Positions 43,108-60,487 of a DNA stretch of 64,000 nt are shown piece after piece. The stretch's first letter is position 1. Every line of letters starts with the position of its first letter. Position numbers and translations under genes: made by a program. The stretch spans positions 1,354,832 through 1,418,831 of the forward strand of contig NW_002060943.1 in assembly GCF_000150275.1 (NCBI RefSeq), written 5' to 3'. Under the pieces are notes generated by a model. The model saw nothing but the letters and a program-made list of their open reading frames with translations, had not been told where the DNA came from and made no database searches. Source of the stretch: Trichoplax adhaerens (lineage: Eukaryota; Animalia; Placozoa).

Positions 43108-46100
43108 TTATTCACCCCCTTCTGGTGCTTTTTCATCTAAACATTATCATGGATAAAGATAAGGAGAAAATATCCATTGTTAATAAGTGATACACATGAT
43201 TAAGACATCATACATATGCTTTTAAAATACCAAAGTCAAAAGTGGATATGGTTTCCAAGTAATGCTTCAAACACTATCAGTTACACTTACAGCCTGATTT
43301 ATTTTGAACTTTTTCAACAACTTTCTTAGTAACACCAGTATCAAGAGCGAAGTAGAGAATAATATCAGCCACGATTAAAGCACCAACAATGGAGAGGATG
43401 ATAATGATAGCCAAAGTGAAAGGTGCCATAGGAGCTAAAGTTATAATTTATGGCGAAGATTATCAAGAGGGTAGCAAAGCCAGAAACATACAAATAGGAA
43501 ATATCAATTCTGACATTCTACTTAATTTTATAGTTTTATAAGAGCAAATAAAGAAGTTATTAGACAGTAAAATTAAGTATTACTCTACCTGCAGCTGTTT
43601 TCACTGTTTTTAAAGGGCTGCTATAAGTGATACCCGCAGTATTTATGGCACCAACACGAACGTTATAGCTTGTCGATCCATTAAGTTTGGTAACTGATGC
43701 GCTCATGACATCTGCTTTAGTCTATGAAATAATGATTTTTATCTTTACAGTTTGTTTGATATACGGAAAAATGTTCAAAATTCTCCATATGTATTAATAA
43801 AGACTAACAATTTATATTATCACAATAGCTACGGATGAATAGTAAGAATTGTAATTTAAAATTGCGTCATTTTTCCATTTCATCCGTTAAATTTATCTAT
43901 TACATTTATTTTGACTTTAAACTACTTGATACTATACATTTATAATAAAGGCATTAAAAAATTTTAATTTGATAGATTGGATTATACAAAGTCATGATCA
44001 ACTGGGCCACTATTTAATCACAATTTATTCACGTTTGTTAATTTATATTACAGAGAATTGGTTATATCAGTGTTGTTTGCATAAGGTTGGATATTAATTT
44101 ATGACCATCTGAATTATAGTAAATTGCTCAGAGATTATATCTTATCTTACAACTAATATGAGAATATCCTAACATGCATTAAACATAAGGCAAATATATT
44201 TCACAGCCTGCAATTTTTGATTTTCAAATAAAGATACTTGATCTATTGGTGTCTTAGATTCTATACAGCTACAGTTATAATCGAAAAATAGCAGTGGCAA
44301 GAATATGTACAATATATGGATATACTAATACGGCAGGAATGAAGGGGCAAGGATACTTCAACTTGTATTGGACATATCAAAATACTGCTGGTAGATCAAT
44401 TTTAATTTAAGAATATAAAATTGATGACCTATCGGTGATTATTCAACATTCTTTACGGCTCTATTTTTGTCATTGGGAGAAATAACTTATATCTATATGG
44501 TATACTCTTATCGAGGCTAATAAGTGGACTAAGTCATGGATATAATATTGAGAAGGTCTTGAGTAAAGATATAGCACTACGTACAGGTGGCCATTCAATT
44601 TAAACACGTTATGCTGCATGAAATGCCAGATATAGATATTAATTTATCCTTAAAATCCTCAATCTGATTCAACAGTTCACGCTACGCTTAGTACGGATAA
44701 ATCATATACATCAGTATCGACTCACTTGCGTGGAAAACCAATTTTTCGATACAACTTTGCCTGCACGAATTTGATATTCAACCTTATAAGCAGTAATGGG
44801 CGCACCGTTATCACTGATTGGTGCCATCCAAGAAACCGTCATAGAATCATACTTGATATTTTCGATAGAAATATTGCGAGGTGCTGTGGGTGGATCTGCA
44901 AGAATCAATGGATAAAATAGCGTCAAGATTTGGAAAACTACCTGGATATTAGGCTAAGTAATAGGAAACTTGCAGATACATTGTACCTGAATAAGGTAGA
45001 TTGCAATGATTAACTTACTTATAACAATGGTTTTAGTTTGTGATTTCTTTGGCTTTCCCCAACCGATTTGATTCTTAGCAGAGACTTGAATCTGATATTC
45101 CTTATTGTAGGTTAATTGGCTTAGAGTATATGGGGTAGTGGCATTATCGATGGTAATCCAGTTCGCATCGCCAACCATTCGATATTCTAAACGATATTCA
45201 GTGACTTTACGTCCATGATCATTGGTAGGTGGTTTCCATGAAACGGTAATCGAATGATCAGTACTTCTAAGGAAGAGCTCTGTTGGCATACTAGGTTCAG
45301 CTGCAAATAAAATGGAAATTAGTACAATAATATACGTTAATCCATAGATGAGAATAAGGACGAGATATAGAAGAGAATTAATCTAGAAAAATTGATTGAT
45401 TATTTCCAGTTGCAGAATACTTTGAGTGCGTTATGTTACTACCATAGCAGTATATTTATATCAAAAAGTATATAGTATAAGTCAAAGCTCATACTGTATT
45501 AATTGTTGATCCTGAGGTACGAGCGCTAATGAAATGAAATTATTCACATCACTACTCTAAATTCAGTACTTGGAAGAAAGGTCTTTGACTACCAAATAGG
45601 CCATAGTACCTTATTTTACATAAAATACGAGTAGATTATCATAGATGACTCTATGATCACTAACGAAAAGTAATGCATATACATGTAAACGAATAGGATC
45701 AGTATTCAATTTTCCTTCTCATTTTAACTTATTTTTGAAAGAGCAACGCCTGGTAGAGAACAAATATTCAAAGTTGATTTTCATTAAATTACCTAAACGA
45801 AGAGTCATTTCGATGGCTTCATAAGAAGGTCCCCAACATCGTCGATTGTGTGCGGCAACTTTGAATTCGTATTCAGTATTATCTTCAAGACCTGTAATGG
45901 TGATTGGTGATTTCTTTCCTGTTTTCATCACGAAGACCATATCAGTATCATTTTTGCGATAATCTACGCGATAGTCATCAACGGGCGCTCCACCATCAAA
46001 GTCAGGTGGCATCCAAGATGCAACAACATGAGTATAGTAGACATCGAATTTAACTTCTGTAGGTACTCTTGGACATTCTATGATTTACAAAATAAGAGTA

Positions 46101-49100
46101 TATTGAATAAAATGATTATAGATAATTCTATCCAAGTTAAAATGATTGATTGGCAGAATTATTTTAGTGATAATTAGACTAGAAAGGATGAATGTACATT
46201 CGGGGACTCCTAAGACATACTCCAGGAGTTTATCTTAAGAGTCCCTATTGTAGTCAAATTACATAACGATTATTCCAAATTAATTCAATTATAAAGAAAA
46301 TTAATCTAAGCATAAATTCTTTGATAGCATCACTAAAAGAAGGATCATTAGTTCAAAATCTACTTTAAAGGTTATTAATCTATTCATAGAATGGATGAAT
46401 ATTGCCCGCTAAAGATGTTTTGATCAATTTAAATTATATCCAATTTATGACAGATACTGTATAATTGGTTCCTTCAATCCTTTCATATTATCGTAAATAG
46501 AGTGTGGATTAGTTTAAAAACGATATAAAATATAAATATATCAAACATTCTTAAAATTAGGGAGACTAAACTATTCAGACAAGGGGAAAAATACGTGATA
46601 TTAAGGTTAGAATAATAGGATAAATAGCTATGAAAGTAACGTATCCTATCGCTACTTCATGACCAACTTATTCAATGAAAACATAATCATTAAACTTCTT
46701 TTTAATAAGTTTATCAATCATTCTCAAAATTAGATAACTAAGCTATTTAGACAAGGAAAGAAAACATGCCTTTAAGGTAAGAAAAATAGGATAAATAGCT
46801 ATGACTGTAACACATCCTATTAAAGCAATTTAAATCCTATCGCCATCTTATGACCAAACTATTCAATAGGGAATGAGTATTAAACTTTTAAATAAAAAGA
46901 TTAAGTATTCTCAAATTAAGCAAACAAAACTAATAAGACAAGGAAAGAAAACATGGTATTAAGGTAAGAATAATAGTATAAATAGCTACCGTATGGGTGT
47001 AACATGTTGACGAGAACAATTTCAATTCTATCACCATTTGACTAAACTATTCGGTAACGACATGATTGTTAAACTTCTTCTCCTTAATTATCCCTTTCAA
47101 AACTGATTATAAGCTTTAGCTCAGCTTACTATCTCGAAGGCACTTGGGTTTCGTGTTTAGCTAAAGTATCGAGCTTAAGATGAAAAGTCGTTTTTCCTAC
47201 AGTAATCTTGCTATTTTACTTTTTCAATACTAGCTGCAGGCATTATTTTGCCTTCTTGTTAAAACTTTATTGGCAATTACATGTTAGGCCTTGAAGTAAA
47301 TTTGTAAAGAGCAAAAATACTCTTACAGTGATTTCTATTGCTAATCGGCGTCTACTTTAAAGGTAAATTTACTCTAGTACAGAGTTCCAATCGAGTTTGC
47401 CTTCATTCAACTTGGAAATTGGATATGTGCTAATTCTATACCGGTATCATGCTTGCAATGAATTATTATTTCTCTAAAGGTAGAAAGACTCACTTGCTCG
47501 ATTTGTTTTAGCAGTAAAGACTTTAGATTCTGCACCGTAAGCAATATTATTGGATACCGCAAATCTGAAATCATAGCTAGTATCGTCCACTAAACCGGAA
47601 ATATCCACTGGACATTTATATTTGGAGCTTTCAATAATTTTTGTTGTCACATTCATAGGAGCACCGGTGGGCCAGTACATGATCTTGTACTTTGTTGCAG
47701 TCGCTTTCTCAGACTCAGGAATAGTGAAACAGACATTAATATGAGAGAATTTGGCATCCAATTTACATTCACTTGGTGGCTTTGGTAAATCTAGAAAGGA
47801 AAGGAAGGATAAAGAAAGACTTGGATCATCCTTCTTGAATTCAATTTATTTGTTACAACTGGCTTGATCGGTTGGTAAGGCGGATCAATTTGCTTCTATA
47901 CAATCTATTCCTAATTCCTTGATAATCAGTCTATAAAATCTATTTCTATCTAGATTATTACCTGAAATATTCAGTGTTGTAGCCTGGATAGTTTTTCTAT
48001 CCTCTTGAAGAGTTGTCTTGACAATGCACGTATAATTCCCTGCATCTTTTTCAGTGACATTTTTAAATACTAAGTTACCATTCTTAGCTACATCCCTGTT
48101 TGGATCTACCCCCAAAATTTCATGGTGATTAAATTTCCATCGATATCTTACTGCGGATATTCCTTTTCCTTCTCCATGACATACTAAGTATCCAGGACGA
48201 CCAATAATGAGGTATTGGGTTGTAGGAGCAATCGCCTTTAACTTTCCTATTTAAGAGTGAAATAATTGGAAAGTTGAAACCATTTTGTGCCAAAAGCGGC
48301 AATAGAAATTATTGCAGAGTATTCAGTTGCATAATTATACAATTCATTTTTAAATCTGTTCTTAATTATAAACGACAAATCATGATCATTAGCACTTAAT
48401 CTATCATATAATGGATTGAAAGCTACAAACCTACTATAATTTTTTTTATAATAATTCATTCAAGATTGAATTTCAATATCAATATGATTTCCTCTATTTT
48501 TACGATACGCTAATTATCCCGTATTAGCAGATCTAGAAGCATTTATCCAACTATAGTCCAATTAGACTTATTCTATATGGTGTTTGCGTTGATCAATGAT
48601 TGAACAAACTTGTAGAATAAAATGGAAGACTTTGATCATCAACTTTACCATTCTAATTGACAACAATTTTTTCTTGTCTCCATAGAAATCAAAAGGTCAT
48701 TTTTTACTAACCGGAAACATAGAGAACGGCAGGTTCTTTTTGAAGAGAATTTTCGTCTAAATAAACACAGTTATAGGTGCCTGCATCGGATAAAGTGGCG
48801 TTGACAATACGCAATTCTGTGCCATTATTTGTCACAACAGTATGCGGATCCGAATCGGGCAGATGAGTTCCATTAGGCGTTTGCCAATACAAGAATTTAC
48901 CAGGAGGTCCTTTTTGATAGATTGTGCAAGTAAAAGTTATATCTTCGCCCACTAAGATACGTTCTACAGCTGGTTTCACCCTAGCATCTATATTGATCAT
49001 GTTCAAATTGGGAAAAGGATTTATTAGAAATATTCCATTTATTTCAGGCAGTTTAATCCAATCTCAAAGAATCCAATTCAACTTGGCCATAAGAATTAAA

Positions 49101-53489: not shown

Positions 53490-55972
53490 TTAAGGATACA
53501 TTGTAAAGTCTATCTCCGAAATGGGTATAAATTCGAGTCTATTAGGCACGGAAAAATTTTCTTCATCATCATCTTGGAAATTTTCCGATGGATTCGCACG
53601 TCCCTGTTTTGATTCGTCCTCTGCTTTGTCCAAGGCAACAGTTGAAATTTCTTTTTCTTTATCGTTTTCCCTTTCTACACTGGCGGTATCATTTTCACTA
53701 TCAGAATCTTCATCGCTGTATGCAACGAGTCCAGGTATTTGCTTCTCTGTTTTCTCCGATAAAACATTGGCACTATCATCGACACCATTATTATCATTAT
53801 CTTGTGCAGCAATCCAATCAGATATGGAATTAAAATCGACTTGTCGGACAAAAGCTTCGCGCGTAAAGTAACCCTATGGATATTTAAAATGTTCAATTTT
53901 TTTATAAATTATACGATTGCAATCGAAGAAAACATTAGTCATCCATTCATCATACCAGCTACAGTCTACAATGACTTTGTTAAGCACAAGCAAGCATTAC
54001 ATAAATATATATATATATATATATAGCCCTTCATCATGCATCATGCCATCACCATCTTTCAAACTACATCACTACTGTAGCTAAGCTGAATTCACACCAC
54101 AATGAAGAAATGATGTGTAATACTATTTACAGTAATTTAATAGTAGCTATTATCATTTGCTTACAGCTTTACTCCAATTTAGCATAGTTCTAGTATCGTA
54201 GGGGCCATGTACCTAAAACAATAACATAATTGTTAGACGTGTGATAACTAATACAAAGTTTCTTTATGATTATCTTCAAAATTATAATAATAAAGTGATG
54301 TTGGTATATCCAATGCAAAAGCCAACCTCAGCATCTTTATCAGAAGACCATTTAAACTCCCATTGCAACGTGGGGCCTACAGAATTTTCTGCTTCTTTGG
54401 CTTTTCTTTTCTCTTCTCTCTTTGCATCACGTAGCTAATAGCAAGAATCATAATTACTTCTATATTCTAATTTGATCGATAGTAAACCAGGTAAAGTTAG
54501 TCAGACACAGCAGCGTACGAACTTCATCAAACTATATCACCTACCGCTTTAGGTTGCCACTCTACAGCACTAACGTAAATATTCCTTCCATCTAACCTCT
54601 AAGAGTGTAGAATGATAAATTTATCAAGCATTATCAAAGTTATCCTCTTATACAAAAGATGTTTGATTTTCAATTGTAGACGCATTGTAGCTTACCGGAT
54701 AATTCATGGCACACCATTTGCGACAATGGAGAGCTACATGAAAGATAAAGCATTATGATATCCCTTTTTCTGATTGAGTTGTAATGATCCACAGTAGAGT
54801 ACAGTAGATCCATCAGTCTTATTTAACTCAATATCAACGATGGCTACACATGAATACCACCATGACGTCACTGTTGGCTAAATTGTTGTTGATGTACAGT
54901 ATGAGACTAATTCAAGTTGCTATAGCTATTTCTGCTTGGGAAAGAATAATATCCACTGCTGATACTAGTCACTTGTACAAAAAAGTCATGATAGTATTAT
55001 ACAGGTAAGAAATGGTAGTATTGAAGTAACAATGGTGTATTGCGTATTTTAACTGACCTTCTTCTGCTGACGAATAAGTCACAAATGCAAAGCCTTTGGA
55101 ATTGCCTGTGTCATGATCTTTAATAATCTTGATATTGGAAAAAAAAATCATTTACTATTATTATCATTTCGTAGAAACAGACTGACAAAGAGCTAAAAGT
55201 AGGTAAAAGGAGTAAAGTGATATGTTGCAATCAAGCAGTCTTGTTCTATGTTAATATGACGTTCAGATCAGTTGTTGATTGTAGGAGTCACCTTAGCATC
55301 CATAAGTTTACCAAAGGAAGAGAAATAATGTGCCAAGGATTCTATATTAATGATGGGCATAAACATCATCCTAGTTAGGACATTATCCTAAGCAATTTGT
55401 AGTGATGGTTATGGTCTATTCTCGAATGAATATGAAGGCAACTGTACCGAATTTCTCTCAACTTGTTGAATCATAATATGACATAACCTCTATATACAGG
55501 TATCCTTTTATCATGACAATATTGTAGTACAAGATACAAGCTCACCTAAGGTAGTATCCCACGACAGATTGCCAATAAATAATTTGGCTGCTGGATCAAC
55601 TATTATTTGGATATTAATACAATATGTCGATTAAGGCAAAGAATTAGCAATAGAAGCTTCTACTGATAACGAGTAGTGCATTCATCAAGTCTGTATAGCA
55701 TTATTTCAAGTCATTGCTTGTCGACATTGGTTGATAACAAGAATGATAGAGGTCAATCTGTTATGGAGAACAGCTGATTGCAAGGTTATTGATTAGCCTC
55801 TATTGCCTATCTTACATTTAAGCCTTTTTCCACTGGTCAAAGTCTCTGCATTATGCGTTTGAGGATGGAGAGGTGCGCTGCGTTTAGCAGCCAGTGGACC
55901 ATTTGCGTTTTCATCGTTTGCACTACGTTTGGTAGCGGTGTACTTCTTATAGCTATAACTGAAGGTAGACAT
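53490..55972 (-). CDS. RRM + CD2BP2-type GYF domain protein, ~320 aa, 9 exons
   Basis: Exons 55972-55816, 55599-55546, 55341-55292, 55127-55058, 54733-54696, 54598-54545, 54434-54327, 54212-54165, 53873-53490 are all GT-AG and phase-consistent. RNP2 KLFIGNL, RNP1 KGFAFVTY, LDGRNIYV; then WEFKWSSDKDAEVHGPYDTRTMLNWSKAGYF and C-terminal EFIPISEIDFTMYP. Confidence 0.82.
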
Positions 55973-56054: not shown

Positions 56055-57172
56055 GTAGAGTACAGTACAGAGTGCAAGTTTGTACCGTAGAGTACAGTAC
56101 AGTACTGTACACAGTCCTGTGCGGTGTTGTTACTGCACTGTACTGTACAGTACAGTACACTGTACTGTTCAGTACAGTACTGTCAATCCAGGACCCGGGA
56201 CGGACCGGGATCAATCTTCTGGAGCCTCTAAACAATGTACAGTACAGTACAGTGTACTGTAGACATTACTGTACACTAGTGTACAGTACAACAACAATGT
56301 GATTTGTCGAATACTGTACTGTACAGTACATACCGTACAGTACAGTACAGTACTGTACTGTACTACAGTGCTGTACCGCGTGAACCGGTTCGAATCAGAG
56401 TACTTTAAGGTGCCCTAAAATCACAAGAGTGAATCAAAATGTAATAAAAATTATACGAATATAAAGCTGAATAACTTGGCTTTTTAATTTCATTGATTAA
56501 AATGAGGTTAATTAAGTAACTTTTACGTAATATTGTACATAGACTGTGCAATAAGTACAGTACTGTACCCTAAAGGCAAGAAGGAGAACCTACAGTACTG
56601 TACACTGTACAGTGTAGAGTACTATCAATCTAGGACCCGAGACGGACCCGGGATAAGGTACAGTACTGTACAAGTGTACAGTATGTACTGTACATTCACA
56701 CGATGAATTTTTTACAGTACTGTACTGTACTGGATTGATGATTCAAAACTTTTTGCAGTGAACTCTACAGTACTGTACTGTACAGTACAGTACAGTATAT
56801 GAAATCACTGAAATCACGAAGGCTCAAGAAAAAAATTCACCCCTTTTGCTCAGCGCTACAGTACTGTACACTGTACTGCACAGGACATACTGTACTGTAC
56901 AGTACGTTCATGTCATACTGATAATCTATCATCGGAGATATCCTTCTAAGGGTATACTGTACAGTATACTGTACAGTATGTCGTATAAATGTCACATTCA
57001 ATGTAAATACTAGACAGCAATTTCAAGGGAATACTGTACAACTTGGATTTTGGAACGAAAGGGAGACATCGAAAATAATCAGATTGTACAGTACAGTACT
57101 GCACAGCAGAGTACAGTACACTGTACTCTACTCTACTGCAGTGGACTGTAAACCAGCATCATTGTACTGAAC
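56055..57172. repeat. Clustered TACAG/CTGTA pentamer and TACAGTACTGTA palindrome array in the divergent intergenic region
   Basis: Dozens of tacag, agtac and ctgta units in both orientations; the self-complementary 12-mer TACAGTACTGTA occurs repeatedly (e.g. ~56556, 56591, 56659, 56713, 56766, 56857). Confidence 0.9.
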
Positions 57173-57450
57173 TGCTTGCGCACATGGGCAGTACGCTACA
57201 GAAGCTTCACGTCACCAGGGCACGATTGCACCATGCTTCAAATCGGCTTGATAGACGAGCATGTGCTCTCGGCCTACGATGCCTGATGACTAGCGTACCG
57301 GTAACGTCAGTCAAGGCGGTAGTGAGGCTACCAGTGACGTCGGTAGTGACAGTGACTCTTGCAAGGGATGACTGGGTAGGACGATGACTTGAAAGAAGGG
57401 TCATACCACTCTGAGGTCTAGCGCATATCATTATCATTACGATATTGAAA

Positions 57451-60400
57451 ATGGCGTCGGCTGGCGGTCAAGGGAGTCCTCAATTTCCTGGAGGTTTAGC
57501 TCCTCCGCCTCCAGCTGCAAATCCCAGTCATCAATCTGGGCAACAGGATGCAAATGCTGCTAATGGATCGAATAATACACTGAACAACGATTGGGTATGT
57601 CCGGGTTCATTCGAAGAATTACATAAGAAATGCAAAGGTACGAACTCGCAAGACACCATTTCTCCATAAGCATCCTTATACTTTTTGGTGAATTGGAGAC
57701 ATGGATAGAATAAATCAATAAGTCAATTGCAACTTCAACTCTGCCTATGGATATAAGTTTAGCGTATTGTATAGGACATTGCTGATGATAGACGTTAGGC
57801 AAGAAGAGCGCAATCGTCATGTTACAGTAAAAGTCACTTTGATGATGCCACAATGATCGCCAAGACTGCTTGTGCAACAACACCAGTAATATCAGTCAAC
57901 CCCCTGATTTAGTCCATGCTAATCATGATTGCTTGTAGGTAACCGTTATCATAGGCCGATGGTAGTCTTGTTACCTATCTCTCATAGTAACATCCATATT
58001 CCAATGAGTTCATGACTCTGCTATGGTTGCTTTCAAATACTTTCCTTCATATTCCACAGTTGGAAGATGAACTCATACATTCCGTTTTCAATGGAAGTTA
58101 TTGGCCAGTACAGTAGTTTGTTTTCATTAGGCAACTTAGCATAGTGTCATAGTCCATCCGCTGCTGTCTACAGTAGATACGAATAAGGTAATGATTCCAA
58201 TTGAAAATCGACCATGTAATCATGATTTCGCTAGCATCATGACTACTAAGATGCTCGTAACTAGTTTTAGGCGAGCCTGTGCATAGGCTCGATCTTACTA
58301 TTTCAACCTACGATACAAATCTCCTGTTGCCAAATAAATAAATTAGCCTAGGATATCAGCAGAATAGGACGTGCTGAACATGACATTGATATGCCTTAAG
58401 CCAATAGGTTAGCACGCAATAGCTGACTTAATTACTGATCGATCCGAATGTGGTAGAGATTGGCCTTAGCCGTTACACCAGACCTTCCCATTGCATATCT
58501 GCTACTGTATTCTGTAACAACGCTTAGCTTGATGACTTTCTGAAACTTAATATTGAACTACCATGTCGTCGAGTTACAATTTTAATCTTACTTGTTGCTG
58601 AATCGCTACATAGTGATGGAACATCTCTATTAATACCGCTTGCCATCATCAAAACTCACATTCATAGTATATCCTGTACAAGTGAGGAGTTTGCTGTTTT
58701 TCGATACAGATTTGCAATTAGTATAATTAGTTCTTTATAAAGCCAAGTCTACATGACAATCTAGAATGAAACGGATCGCTCATGTTTTCACCTTAATTGC
58801 AATCTAGACGTGTATGTAAATGACTGCTAACAAATGTGATAGCGGTGCGAGTAAAGTATCATCAGCGACGCCATCCAATGAAGATCTGTTAAAATTAATT
58901 GTACAATATAAAGCCGTAAAGTATCGAGGCCGGTAGTTTTACCTTTGTCCAGTTTGTTCAGTATAACTTGGTTGCTTACGATGTCAATTGTGCTACAAAA
59001 AAAGTACATGGTCTTGTTTAACCTTAGCTTTACTCAAACGTTATTTGTAACATGAATCTACTTGTACAGTACATGGTAATTGTATATTCACATTGCACAC
59101 ATCATGGCATCATATCGTACGCCTAGATAACTTTTAGATCACTTCAAATAGTACATAAGATGATGGCATGTTAATGTGTAACAGTTGGTACTGAATGTTG
59201 ATGATATCGCTTTTTAATCTTTTCCCATAACTTGACTTTTTCAGACTTAATGCCACAACCTTTTGAGGGTTGCAAACTACTCATTAATAAAGGTCTTAGT
59301 AGTCACTTTCAAGTCAATCATAGCATCCATTTAAGTTCAGCAAACAATTCTTCCTACCATTTCGGTGCAACTTACGTTGGTAATAAGCAGCTGTCCCCTA
59401 CGGAGGTTTTACAATTTCTAAATTAAGACATTTGTGTTTCAATGAATAGTATGCAAAGAAATGGCATTTCGCTTAACTGACATCATTGATATTATTATTA
59501 CCTATTATCTTTTAAAGGCGTTTCCTGTGCTTGTTGGAGACATGGATAATAATTATAATTTAAACGCTCAGATAATTCATGAAATTGTCCACGGTTTGAG
59601 AACCAAATGTGTCATTCAGGTAAACTCAAGTAAAGAATTGAGAAAATTAAATGATAATTTTGATATGAAAGGAAATGGGAATATTTATAAAAACACATTG
59701 AGTACTTGCATCTATAATATACTGTCAATTTTAATTCAATCCAATGCAATAATCACAGACTCAGAAAGCTGTATGGCAAATGGCTCAGCTAGGTCTAGAT
59801 TACCGTGGTAAAGATTTTGTTGCTAGCGTTACAACAGCAAATCCTAATATTATCGATGAATCTGGTGTAGTAGCCTTTCATTACCTGCAAAGCATTACTC
59901 GGAAGCTTTGTTTAGGAGCTGAATATTTATATCAGTATGGTGGTGGGATGGAAGGAGCAGTACTCTCCCTAGGCGGTCGATATACAGGTAAGAGATAAAT
60001 ATTATTGTCTTCACGTCATAGGCAGCTATTCGCAATGCAAGATACACCGTTGAATACAGTAGTTGGATTGTGAATGAATATAGCCATCAACCTCAACTGT
60101 AGTCATGCAGAGACGTTAGGAGGATTATAAGTAAAAATTTCTATATATCGATTGTTTTATTTAACAGGAAAAAATTGGATTGCTGCTGCAACTGCTAGTG
60201 GCATGAACGTAAATATGACTTACTATCATATTGGGAACGAATCGGTTCGTGCTGGAGTCGATCTTGACGTTAATCTTAGAACAAGGGAAAGTGTAGTTAG
60301 CTTAGGTTATGAATTGGACGTCCAAAAAGCAAACATGACCGTAAAGAATTCAATCGATAGCAATTGGACGATAACGTCGGTGATAGAAAAGAAATTACTA

Positions 60401-60487
60401 CCTATGCCGTTTACTTTAACACTTAGTGGCATACTCAACCATGTATCAAATAAATGCCAATTTGGTGTTGGATTTATTGTTGGATAA
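57451..60487 (+). CDS. TOMM40: Mitochondrial import receptor subunit TOM40, ~332 aa, 5 exons
   Basis: Exons 57451-57637, 59245-59405, 59518-59619, 59759-59987, 60168-60487. Motifs [71 protein letters not shown] and the terminal beta-signal FGVGFIVG. Confidence 0.96.

Follow-up and report, generated by a model that had tools for sequence, protein, structure and literature searches.

The locus described here raises the question of whether an RNA recognition motif (RRM) and a GYF domain of the CD2BP2 (U5-52K) type are encoded by one gene in the placozoan Trichoplax adhaerens and, if so, what such a protein would do. It lies on the minus strand (nt 55972 – 53490) of a 64,000-nucleotide stretch of contig NW_002060943.1 (the window in what follows), which is AT-rich, with a G+C content of about 32%. 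The evidence points to a single gene of nine exons, the product of which carries an RRM followed by a GYF domain that, as judged from its sequence and predicted structure, is of the CD2BP2 type. The reading that we favour, with moderate confidence, is that the protein would be an RNA-bound adaptor recruiting splicing proteins that bear PPG motifs. Human GYF proteins are limited to CD2BP2, GIGYF1 and GIGYF2 (PMC10187677), and none of the three binds RNA itself, while the Trichoplax protein, which comes from a very simple animal, carries an RRM together with a GYF domain of the spliceosomal type. It would be a compact example, open to test, in which the recognition of RNA and that of proline-rich motifs are directly coupled. 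The gain is modest, since the two domains are familiar ones, domain shuffling occurs often, the sequence is public, and the function is one that we infer.

One gene or two neighbours

The gene begins with an ATG at nt 55972 and ends with a TAA at nt 53492 – 53490, its nine exons adding up to 963 nt, or 320 codons plus the stop. All eight introns are bounded by GT and AG, and the joined phases (exon starts 0, 1, 1, 0, 1, 0, 0, 0 and 0) are free of stop codons. The original prediction, made from the letters of the window, had proposed nine phase-consistent exons, and each of these was recovered in its place. Because every exon equals, over its whole codons, the matching stretch of a public T. 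adhaerens protein of 320 residues (XP_002108460.1 / EDV29258.1 / B3RIV1, TRIADDRAFT_51379; P0001), the predicted model is the same as the public annotation, where it is named "uncharacterized". Trichoplax sp. H2 has been annotated independently, and the model there (RDD36859.1; L006, NOWV01000305.1) likewise has 320 residues, three of which differ. The H2 record bears the name 'Glycine-rich RNA-binding protein 2', a best-hit label that misleads, as a GYF domain is present and a glycine-rich region is not. Public records already contain the sequence, with RRM_1 and GYF precomputed; the protein had been put forward as undescribed, which holds in so far as it is uncharacterised and does not hold for the sequence.

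RRMs are recognised by their RNP1 and RNP2 consensus motifs. In the present gene, exon 1 (nt 55816 – 55972) encodes a basic N-terminus (residues 1 – 52, isoelectric point (pI) about 9.9) with clusters of Lys and Arg (KR), and ends in phase 1. The RRM starts in exon 2 (nt 55546 – 55599) with the RNP2 hexamer LFIGNL, and continues with the helix 1 region in exon 3 (nt 55292 – 55341), strands beta2 and beta3 and the RNP1 octamer KGFAFVTY in exon 4 (nt 55058 – 55127), helix 2 in exon 5 (nt 54696 – 54733), and beta4 with the end of the domain in exon 6 (nt 54545 – 54598). Both motifs are canonical and their aromatic residues are present. The domain had been described as complete on the basis of KLFIGNL and KGFAFVTY, and the whole protein scores 62.2 bits against Pfam RRM_1 (PF00076, cut-off 20.7) over residues 59 – 116. 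Exon 4 by itself passes the same cut-off (26.6 bits) and is the only exon with a Pfam match in an exon-by-exon scan; the GYF exon pieces are too short to be detected by Pfam singly. The nearest RRM sequences and structures, found by a PDB sequence search with exon 4 and by a structure search, are those of hnRNP A/B, Musashi, CIRBP/RBM3 and plant glycine-rich proteins (35 – 43% identity), and the best RRM paralogue in the Trichoplax genome is only 35% identical. These single-RRM proteins resemble the Trichoplax protein in their canonical RNP1 and RNP2, but the latter has no glycine-rich or RGG tail, and its C-terminal half consists of the GYF domain and an acidic insert.

The remaining exons encode that half. 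Exon 7 (nt 54327 – 54434) specifies a helical linker rich in Lys and Glu, the first GYF strand (WEFKW, in which Trp occupies GYF position 8) and the long loop between beta1 and beta2. Exon 8 (nt 54165 – 54212) carries beta2 and then the first part of the helix (GPY-x4-M-x2-W). Exon 9 (nt 53490 – 53873) opens with the GYF tripeptide, beta3 and a conserved extra helix (residues 207 – 220), and continues with a disordered insert of about 90 – 100 residues, which is acidic and rich in Ser, and with the closing strand (IDFTMYP), in which F316 is the predicted 'Phe plug'.

That the two halves belong to one gene is best seen by comparison with a metagenome contig from ENA (L005; 3097 bp, 31.9% G+C), which holds a diverged, placozoan-like orthologue. 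A tblastn search with the Trichoplax protein matched the tail of exon 1 and all of exons 2 – 9, in order. When the two loci are aligned as DNA, similarity is confined to the exons and ends no more than a few bases from their boundaries. The exon lengths of 54, 50, 70, 38, 54, 108 and 48 nt (exons 2 – 8) are retained in the contig, as are all AG acceptors and all GT donors. Over whole codons, the proportion of synonymous differences (pS) is 0.64, which is near saturation, while that of non-synonymous differences (pN) is 0.079, giving a ratio of non-synonymous to synonymous rates (dN/dS) of about 0.06. In protein, the RRM exons hardly vary: exon 2 shows 94% amino acid identity, and exons 3 and 4 encode identical protein despite 9 and 11 synonymous changes, respectively. 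The GYF exons are also constrained (pN 0.09 – 0.23), and both halves are under purifying selection. Together with the retained splice structure, this selection supports a single gene. A degenerating paralogue was considered and rejected on the dN/dS of about 0.06.

An open reading frame (ORF) of 167 residues predicted in the same metagenome contig (P0002, and P0010; L005:2206-2709) is an artefact, in that a prokaryotic gene caller started inside intron 8. Its real coding sequence runs only from about residue 23 onwards and represents exon 9 of the diverged orthologue.

Could an RRM gene and a neighbouring GYF gene have been wrongly merged, both by the gene predictors and by the original prediction? 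An RRM-only product is conceivable, as read-through of the exon 6 donor meets a stop after 5 codons, and the model is one of comparison and annotation, no transcript having been retrieved: a search for contigs encoding P0001 gave no match, and one for P0009 returned only the annotated genome of Trichoplax sp. H2 and no transcript contig. Several points argue against two genes, however. The intron between exons 6 and 7 is just 110 nt long, neither species has an ATG in frame in exon 7, those within intron 6 lie in another frame or soon run into a stop, and the first in-frame Met beyond exon 6 falls within the GYF domain itself. The phase-0 junction and the exon lengths are, moreover, kept in the metagenome orthologue even though synonymous sites are nearly saturated. 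A merger of two genes is, on this evidence, very improbable, and the claim of a single gene joining an RRM to a GYF domain of the CD2BP2 subfamily is borne out by the exon conservation just described and by the features of the GYF domain given below.

The GYF domain and its relation to CD2BP2

The GYF domain is detected in the spliced protein by Pfam (PF02213) at 46.0 bits (cut-off 25.7; residues 166 – 206). The published signature, GP[FY]-x4-[MVI]-x2-W-x3-GYF (PMC10187677), is found in the narrower form GP[FY]-x4-M-x2-W-x3-GYF, matched exactly at residues 180 – 196 and split between exons 8 and 9, with WEFKW in exon 7; an exact match to the consensus in a domain spread over three exons is what had been predicted. 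The assembly, of 105.6 Mb, has the gene on contig C1414, and a six-frame scan of that genome with the GYF profile detected exon 8 (L003). Exons 7 – 9 align in a colinear and contiguous manner with the CD2BP2 protein of the same genome (its residues 242 – 256, 257 – 270, 273 – 285 and 297 – 302). PDB sequence searches with exon 7 and with exon 9 gave no matches.

Two types of GYF domain are distinguished. In the CD2BP2 type, position 8 is Trp and the beta1-beta2 loop is long (Kofler and Freund 2006, quoted in PMC10187677), while the Smy2/GIGYF type combines Asp at this position with a short loop (PMC10187677). In both types a C-terminal 'Phe plug', which in human CD2BP2 is F337, is a component of the hydrophobic core (PMC10187677). 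In the Trichoplax protein, position 8 is Trp (W170, aligned with human W287), the beta1-beta2 loop is as long as in CD2BP2 orthologues (the alignment is free of gaps), and the C-terminus reads IDFTMYP, compared with IDFDLYT in CD2BP2. The Trp and the long loop also set the domain apart from the Smy2/GIGYF type. On sequence and modelled structure, the domain is assigned to the CD2BP2 type.

An AlphaFold2 model gave high predicted confidence (pLDDT) for residues 161 – 210 (91 – 96) and 311 – 320 (93), and values below 50 for residues 223 – 293. In a search of 48,161 PDB representatives, the top match to the model (residues 159 – 320) was the GYF domain of U5-52K (4bws_C; Z 10.2, root-mean-square deviation (rmsd) 1.9 A, 66 of 66 residues, 276 – 341), and a second U5-52K structure scored similarly (1syx_F; Z 10.0, rmsd 1.5 A, 62 of 62 residues). 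The matches to Smy2 (3fma, Z 6.8) and GIGYF1 (7ruq, Z 6.6) were weaker. In the predicted model the C-terminal Phe plug is packed into the core of a GYF fold. A model built from the single sequence (ESM Atlas) also aligned, over residues 144 – 320, to a chordate GYF cluster. A Foldseek search with the whole model listed RRMs only, the GYF match coming from the wider search of PDB representatives.

What distinguishes the domain is an insertion of about 100 residues between the GYF core and the closing strand, which is absent from CD2BP2. It begins with a conserved helix (residues 207 – 220, FNSISDWI...), after which the sequence is acidic (28% Asp plus Glu, pI 4.1) and rich in Ser, and has diverged in the metagenome orthologue. 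Within the insert, YSD[ED]DSD is kept in both, and beyond it the closing LEFIPISE[IV]DFT[ML]YP. The insert may be regarded as a natural experiment on the GYF fold, in which about 100 disordered residues would be tolerated between core and Phe plug.

The genome also has a canonical CD2BP2 gene (TRIADDRAFT_28719; P0011), which encodes 303 residues, is intronless, and is located on contig C1406 (L001:1453-2364; region 2500404-2500535). It is a single uninterrupted ORF, compared with the eight introns of the RRM-GYF gene. This answers the question, raised with the original prediction, of whether a separate CD2BP2 exists; it does, and it has no RRM. It has clear orthologues across Metazoa, and among the best 120 of 426 relatives each has a GYF domain only. 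BLASTP aligned the two Trichoplax proteins over the GYF domain alone (43% identity over 44 residues, E 2e-11), in agreement with the predicted absence of the large N-terminal region of CD2BP2. In CD2BP2, that region binds PRP8 via D1 (human residues 62 – 130) and D2 (150 – 233), and the GYF domain brings DIM1 to the U5 small nuclear ribonucleoprotein (snRNP) (PMC11102862). As nothing beyond the GYF domain is shared, and D1 and D2 are missing, the RRM-GYF protein was rejected as the canonical CD2BP2 orthologue, the true orthologue being elsewhere in the genome. Since it lacks the feature that defines the CD2BP2 group, and a GIGYF-type gene is present separately on contig C1409, it is counted as the third GYF protein of the genome. 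From the missing PRP8-binding regions, it also appears not to be a second assembly factor of the U5 snRNP.

The likeness to CD2BP2/U5-52K and yeast Lin1 therefore lies in WExKW, the long loop, the GYF signature, and the terminal IDFxxY with its Phe plug; the differences are an RRM in place of D1/D2 and about 100 acidic residues inside the GYF domain. GIGYF1/2 and yeast Smy2 share the GYF fold, the Phe plug and an adaptor role linking RNA-bound factors to effectors (PMC10187677), but in them position 8 is Asp and the loop is short, and the GIGYF proteins themselves lack an RNA-binding domain. In a GYF tree (72 columns, no outgroup) the RRM-GYF protein is placed apart from all 63 metazoan CD2BP2 rows, its branch being a very long one of 4.5 substitutions per site, although grouping it with placozoan CD2BP2 in one clade is not rejected (approximately unbiased (AU) test, p 0.26). 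The gene may be either a duplicate that arose in placozoans and evolves fast or a paralogue of old standing.

The presence of a CD2BP2-type domain raises the matter of DIM1. If the domain acted via its second, non-proline face, the protein might bring DIM1 to RNA, or act as a decoy that competes with CD2BP2. The two best structural matches, 4bws and 1syx, are indeed U5-52K GYF chains taken from DIM1 complexes, the CD2BP2 domain delivers DIM1, and a highly conserved, intronless DIM1 gene is present in Trichoplax (L007:1492-1917). The long GYF branch suggests altered surfaces, however; a predicted complex of the GYF region (residues 155 – 320) with Trichoplax DIM1 scored 0.00 in a run without controls, and weighs neither way. 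A DIM1 tether or decoy is considered unlikely. A second DIM1-like gene, which is spliced, is found on contig C1413.

Proposed function

The favoured reading, that of an RNA-bound adaptor for PPG-motif splicing proteins, can be put as a series of steps. The basic N-terminus would direct the protein to the nucleus, in keeping with the nuclear subtype of the GYF domain, and there the RRM would hold single-stranded RNA. The GYF groove would bind proline-rich motifs of the PPG type, most plausibly those in the SmB tail of snRNPs, or in other splicing factors, and the bound factors would be brought to particular RNAs, much as RBM5 does with its RRMs and OCRE domain. The acidic insert may serve as a regulatory loop, possibly a phosphorylated one.

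The proposal draws on several features. The KR clusters of the N-terminus resemble a bipartite nuclear localisation signal. By alignment, the groove residues W170, Y182, M187, W190, Y195 and F196 are kept, from which the proline-binding groove appears largely intact. The GYF domain of CD2BP2 is reported to bind proline-rich motifs of SmB, and the OCRE domain of RBM5 does likewise (PMC5127646). RBM5 and RBM10 are the closest case of a protein that works in the proposed manner, having one or more RRMs and a module for proline motifs (OCRE, which recognises the tails of SmN/B/B') in one chain (PMC5127646). They differ in that OCRE is a beta-sheet domain while GYF is alpha/beta, and in that RBM5 is much larger, with many domains; homology extends to the RRM superfamily only. 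As to the ligand, an exon bearing PPPGM is located 3.4 kb downstream of the best Sm-domain match in the genome, on the same strand, and is a candidate SmB tail. A search of the genome with the pattern PPPGMR gave no match, and a looser search with PPPGM found mostly formin FH1 regions. Repeat ORFs of poly-proline with PPPPPGM or PPPPGI, which are FH1-like, were seen at two places (L015 and L013; C1410:4978107-4978400 and C1402:598519-598569).

Several points weigh against this reading. The acidic insert splits the GYF domain ahead of its closing strand, and the junction of exons 6 and 7 is drawn from comparative evidence and two genome annotations. The alignment on which the AlphaFold2 model was built (A1) biases it, since A1 contains mostly CD2BP2 orthologues and the model leans to the CD2BP2 fold for that reason. 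Peptide binding is predicted from the groove sequence, and within the groove, two positions depart from human CD2BP2: the Tyr corresponding to Y285, which makes a hydrogen bond to the peptide backbone, is Phe, and Y296 is His, so that the ligand preference may differ. Nuclear localisation is a guess from the basic clusters, and the candidate SmB tail was assigned by its proximity to the Sm-domain match.

Were the protein cytoplasmic, it could instead bind mRNAs and recruit repressors or decay factors with PPG motifs, as a one-piece version of the GIGYF system. In translational repression, GYF adaptors do connect RNA-binding proteins with effectors (PMC10187677), and the RRM belongs to the broad hnRNP A/B, Musashi and glycine-rich-protein type, members of which are also active in the cytoplasm. 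The GYF domain itself speaks against such a role, being of the nuclear CD2BP2 type with a Trp at position 8 that closes the cavity used by Smy2-type domains for PPG-Phi ligands. The basic N-terminus resembles a nuclear signal, and the genome already has a GIGYF-type gene. A cytoplasmic regulator is regarded as improbable, and recruitment of splicing proteins to RNA in the nucleus is retained as the preferred reading.

A bolder form of the preferred reading, which is tentative and less likely than not, would place the protein in a third animal class of GYF proteins beside CD2BP2 and GIGYF, represented in Placozoa. It would be a self-contained bridge from RNA to snRNPs, the RRM being coupled directly to the GYF domain and the latter being gated by a phosphorylatable acidic loop between core and Phe plug, and its gene would be either an ancient one lost elsewhere or a placozoan invention. 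If this is true, such a bridge would provide a simple natural model for recruiting the proline-rich tails of snRNPs to specific RNAs.

Distribution of the architecture and neighbouring features

Exon 9 was used in the sole exhaustive search that was free of profiles, in which phmmer compared it with 1.84 billion cluster representatives and returned two proteins, the Trichoplax protein and the metagenome ORF described above (P0002). Further proteins with both RRM and GYF were not found by a word search with the whole protein, by a search with the GYF region, or among the best 120 of 426 CD2BP2 relatives, nor was any relative with both domains found in ESM Atlas clusters or JGI metagenomes. The literature search recovered no description of this protein or of an RRM-GYF family. 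In the searches made, the architecture is seen in placozoans only, and it is likely, on the sequences compared, to be restricted to them.

This part of the original prediction has to be qualified in one respect. A survey of the GYF family in the plant Vanilla planifolia lists RRM_1 among the domains of the family, with neither its bearer nor the GYF subtype being stated (PMC13132833). To judge from this entry, GYF and RRM may co-occur outside Placozoa. As described in that survey, plant GYF-family proteins are large and multi-domain (zf-CCCH, Plus-3, SWIB, SET and others), and in this they are unlike the Trichoplax protein. A wider RRM-GYF family that escaped detection, which would make the architecture an ordinary one, could be argued from this entry and from the reach of the methods, in that the sensitive search of the whole library was limited to exon 9 and word searches require shared 5-mers. 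Set against it are the several searches above, none of which gave a two-domain match, and the lack of any such family in the literature found. We consider a family of this kind rather improbable, and a placozoan restriction remains the preferred reading.

The surroundings of the gene may be described briefly. Between its start (nt 55972, minus strand) and a divergent neighbour lies a dense array of palindromic repeats of the TACAG/CTGTA type (nt 56055 – 57172). The neighbour (nt 57445 – 60487, plus strand) resembles, from its ORF translations only, a mitochondrial import channel of the TOM40 type. Downstream of the gene, on the minus strand (nt 45719 – 49006), are exons with immunoglobulin (Ig)-like and fibronectin-III-like segments of a cell-surface protein.

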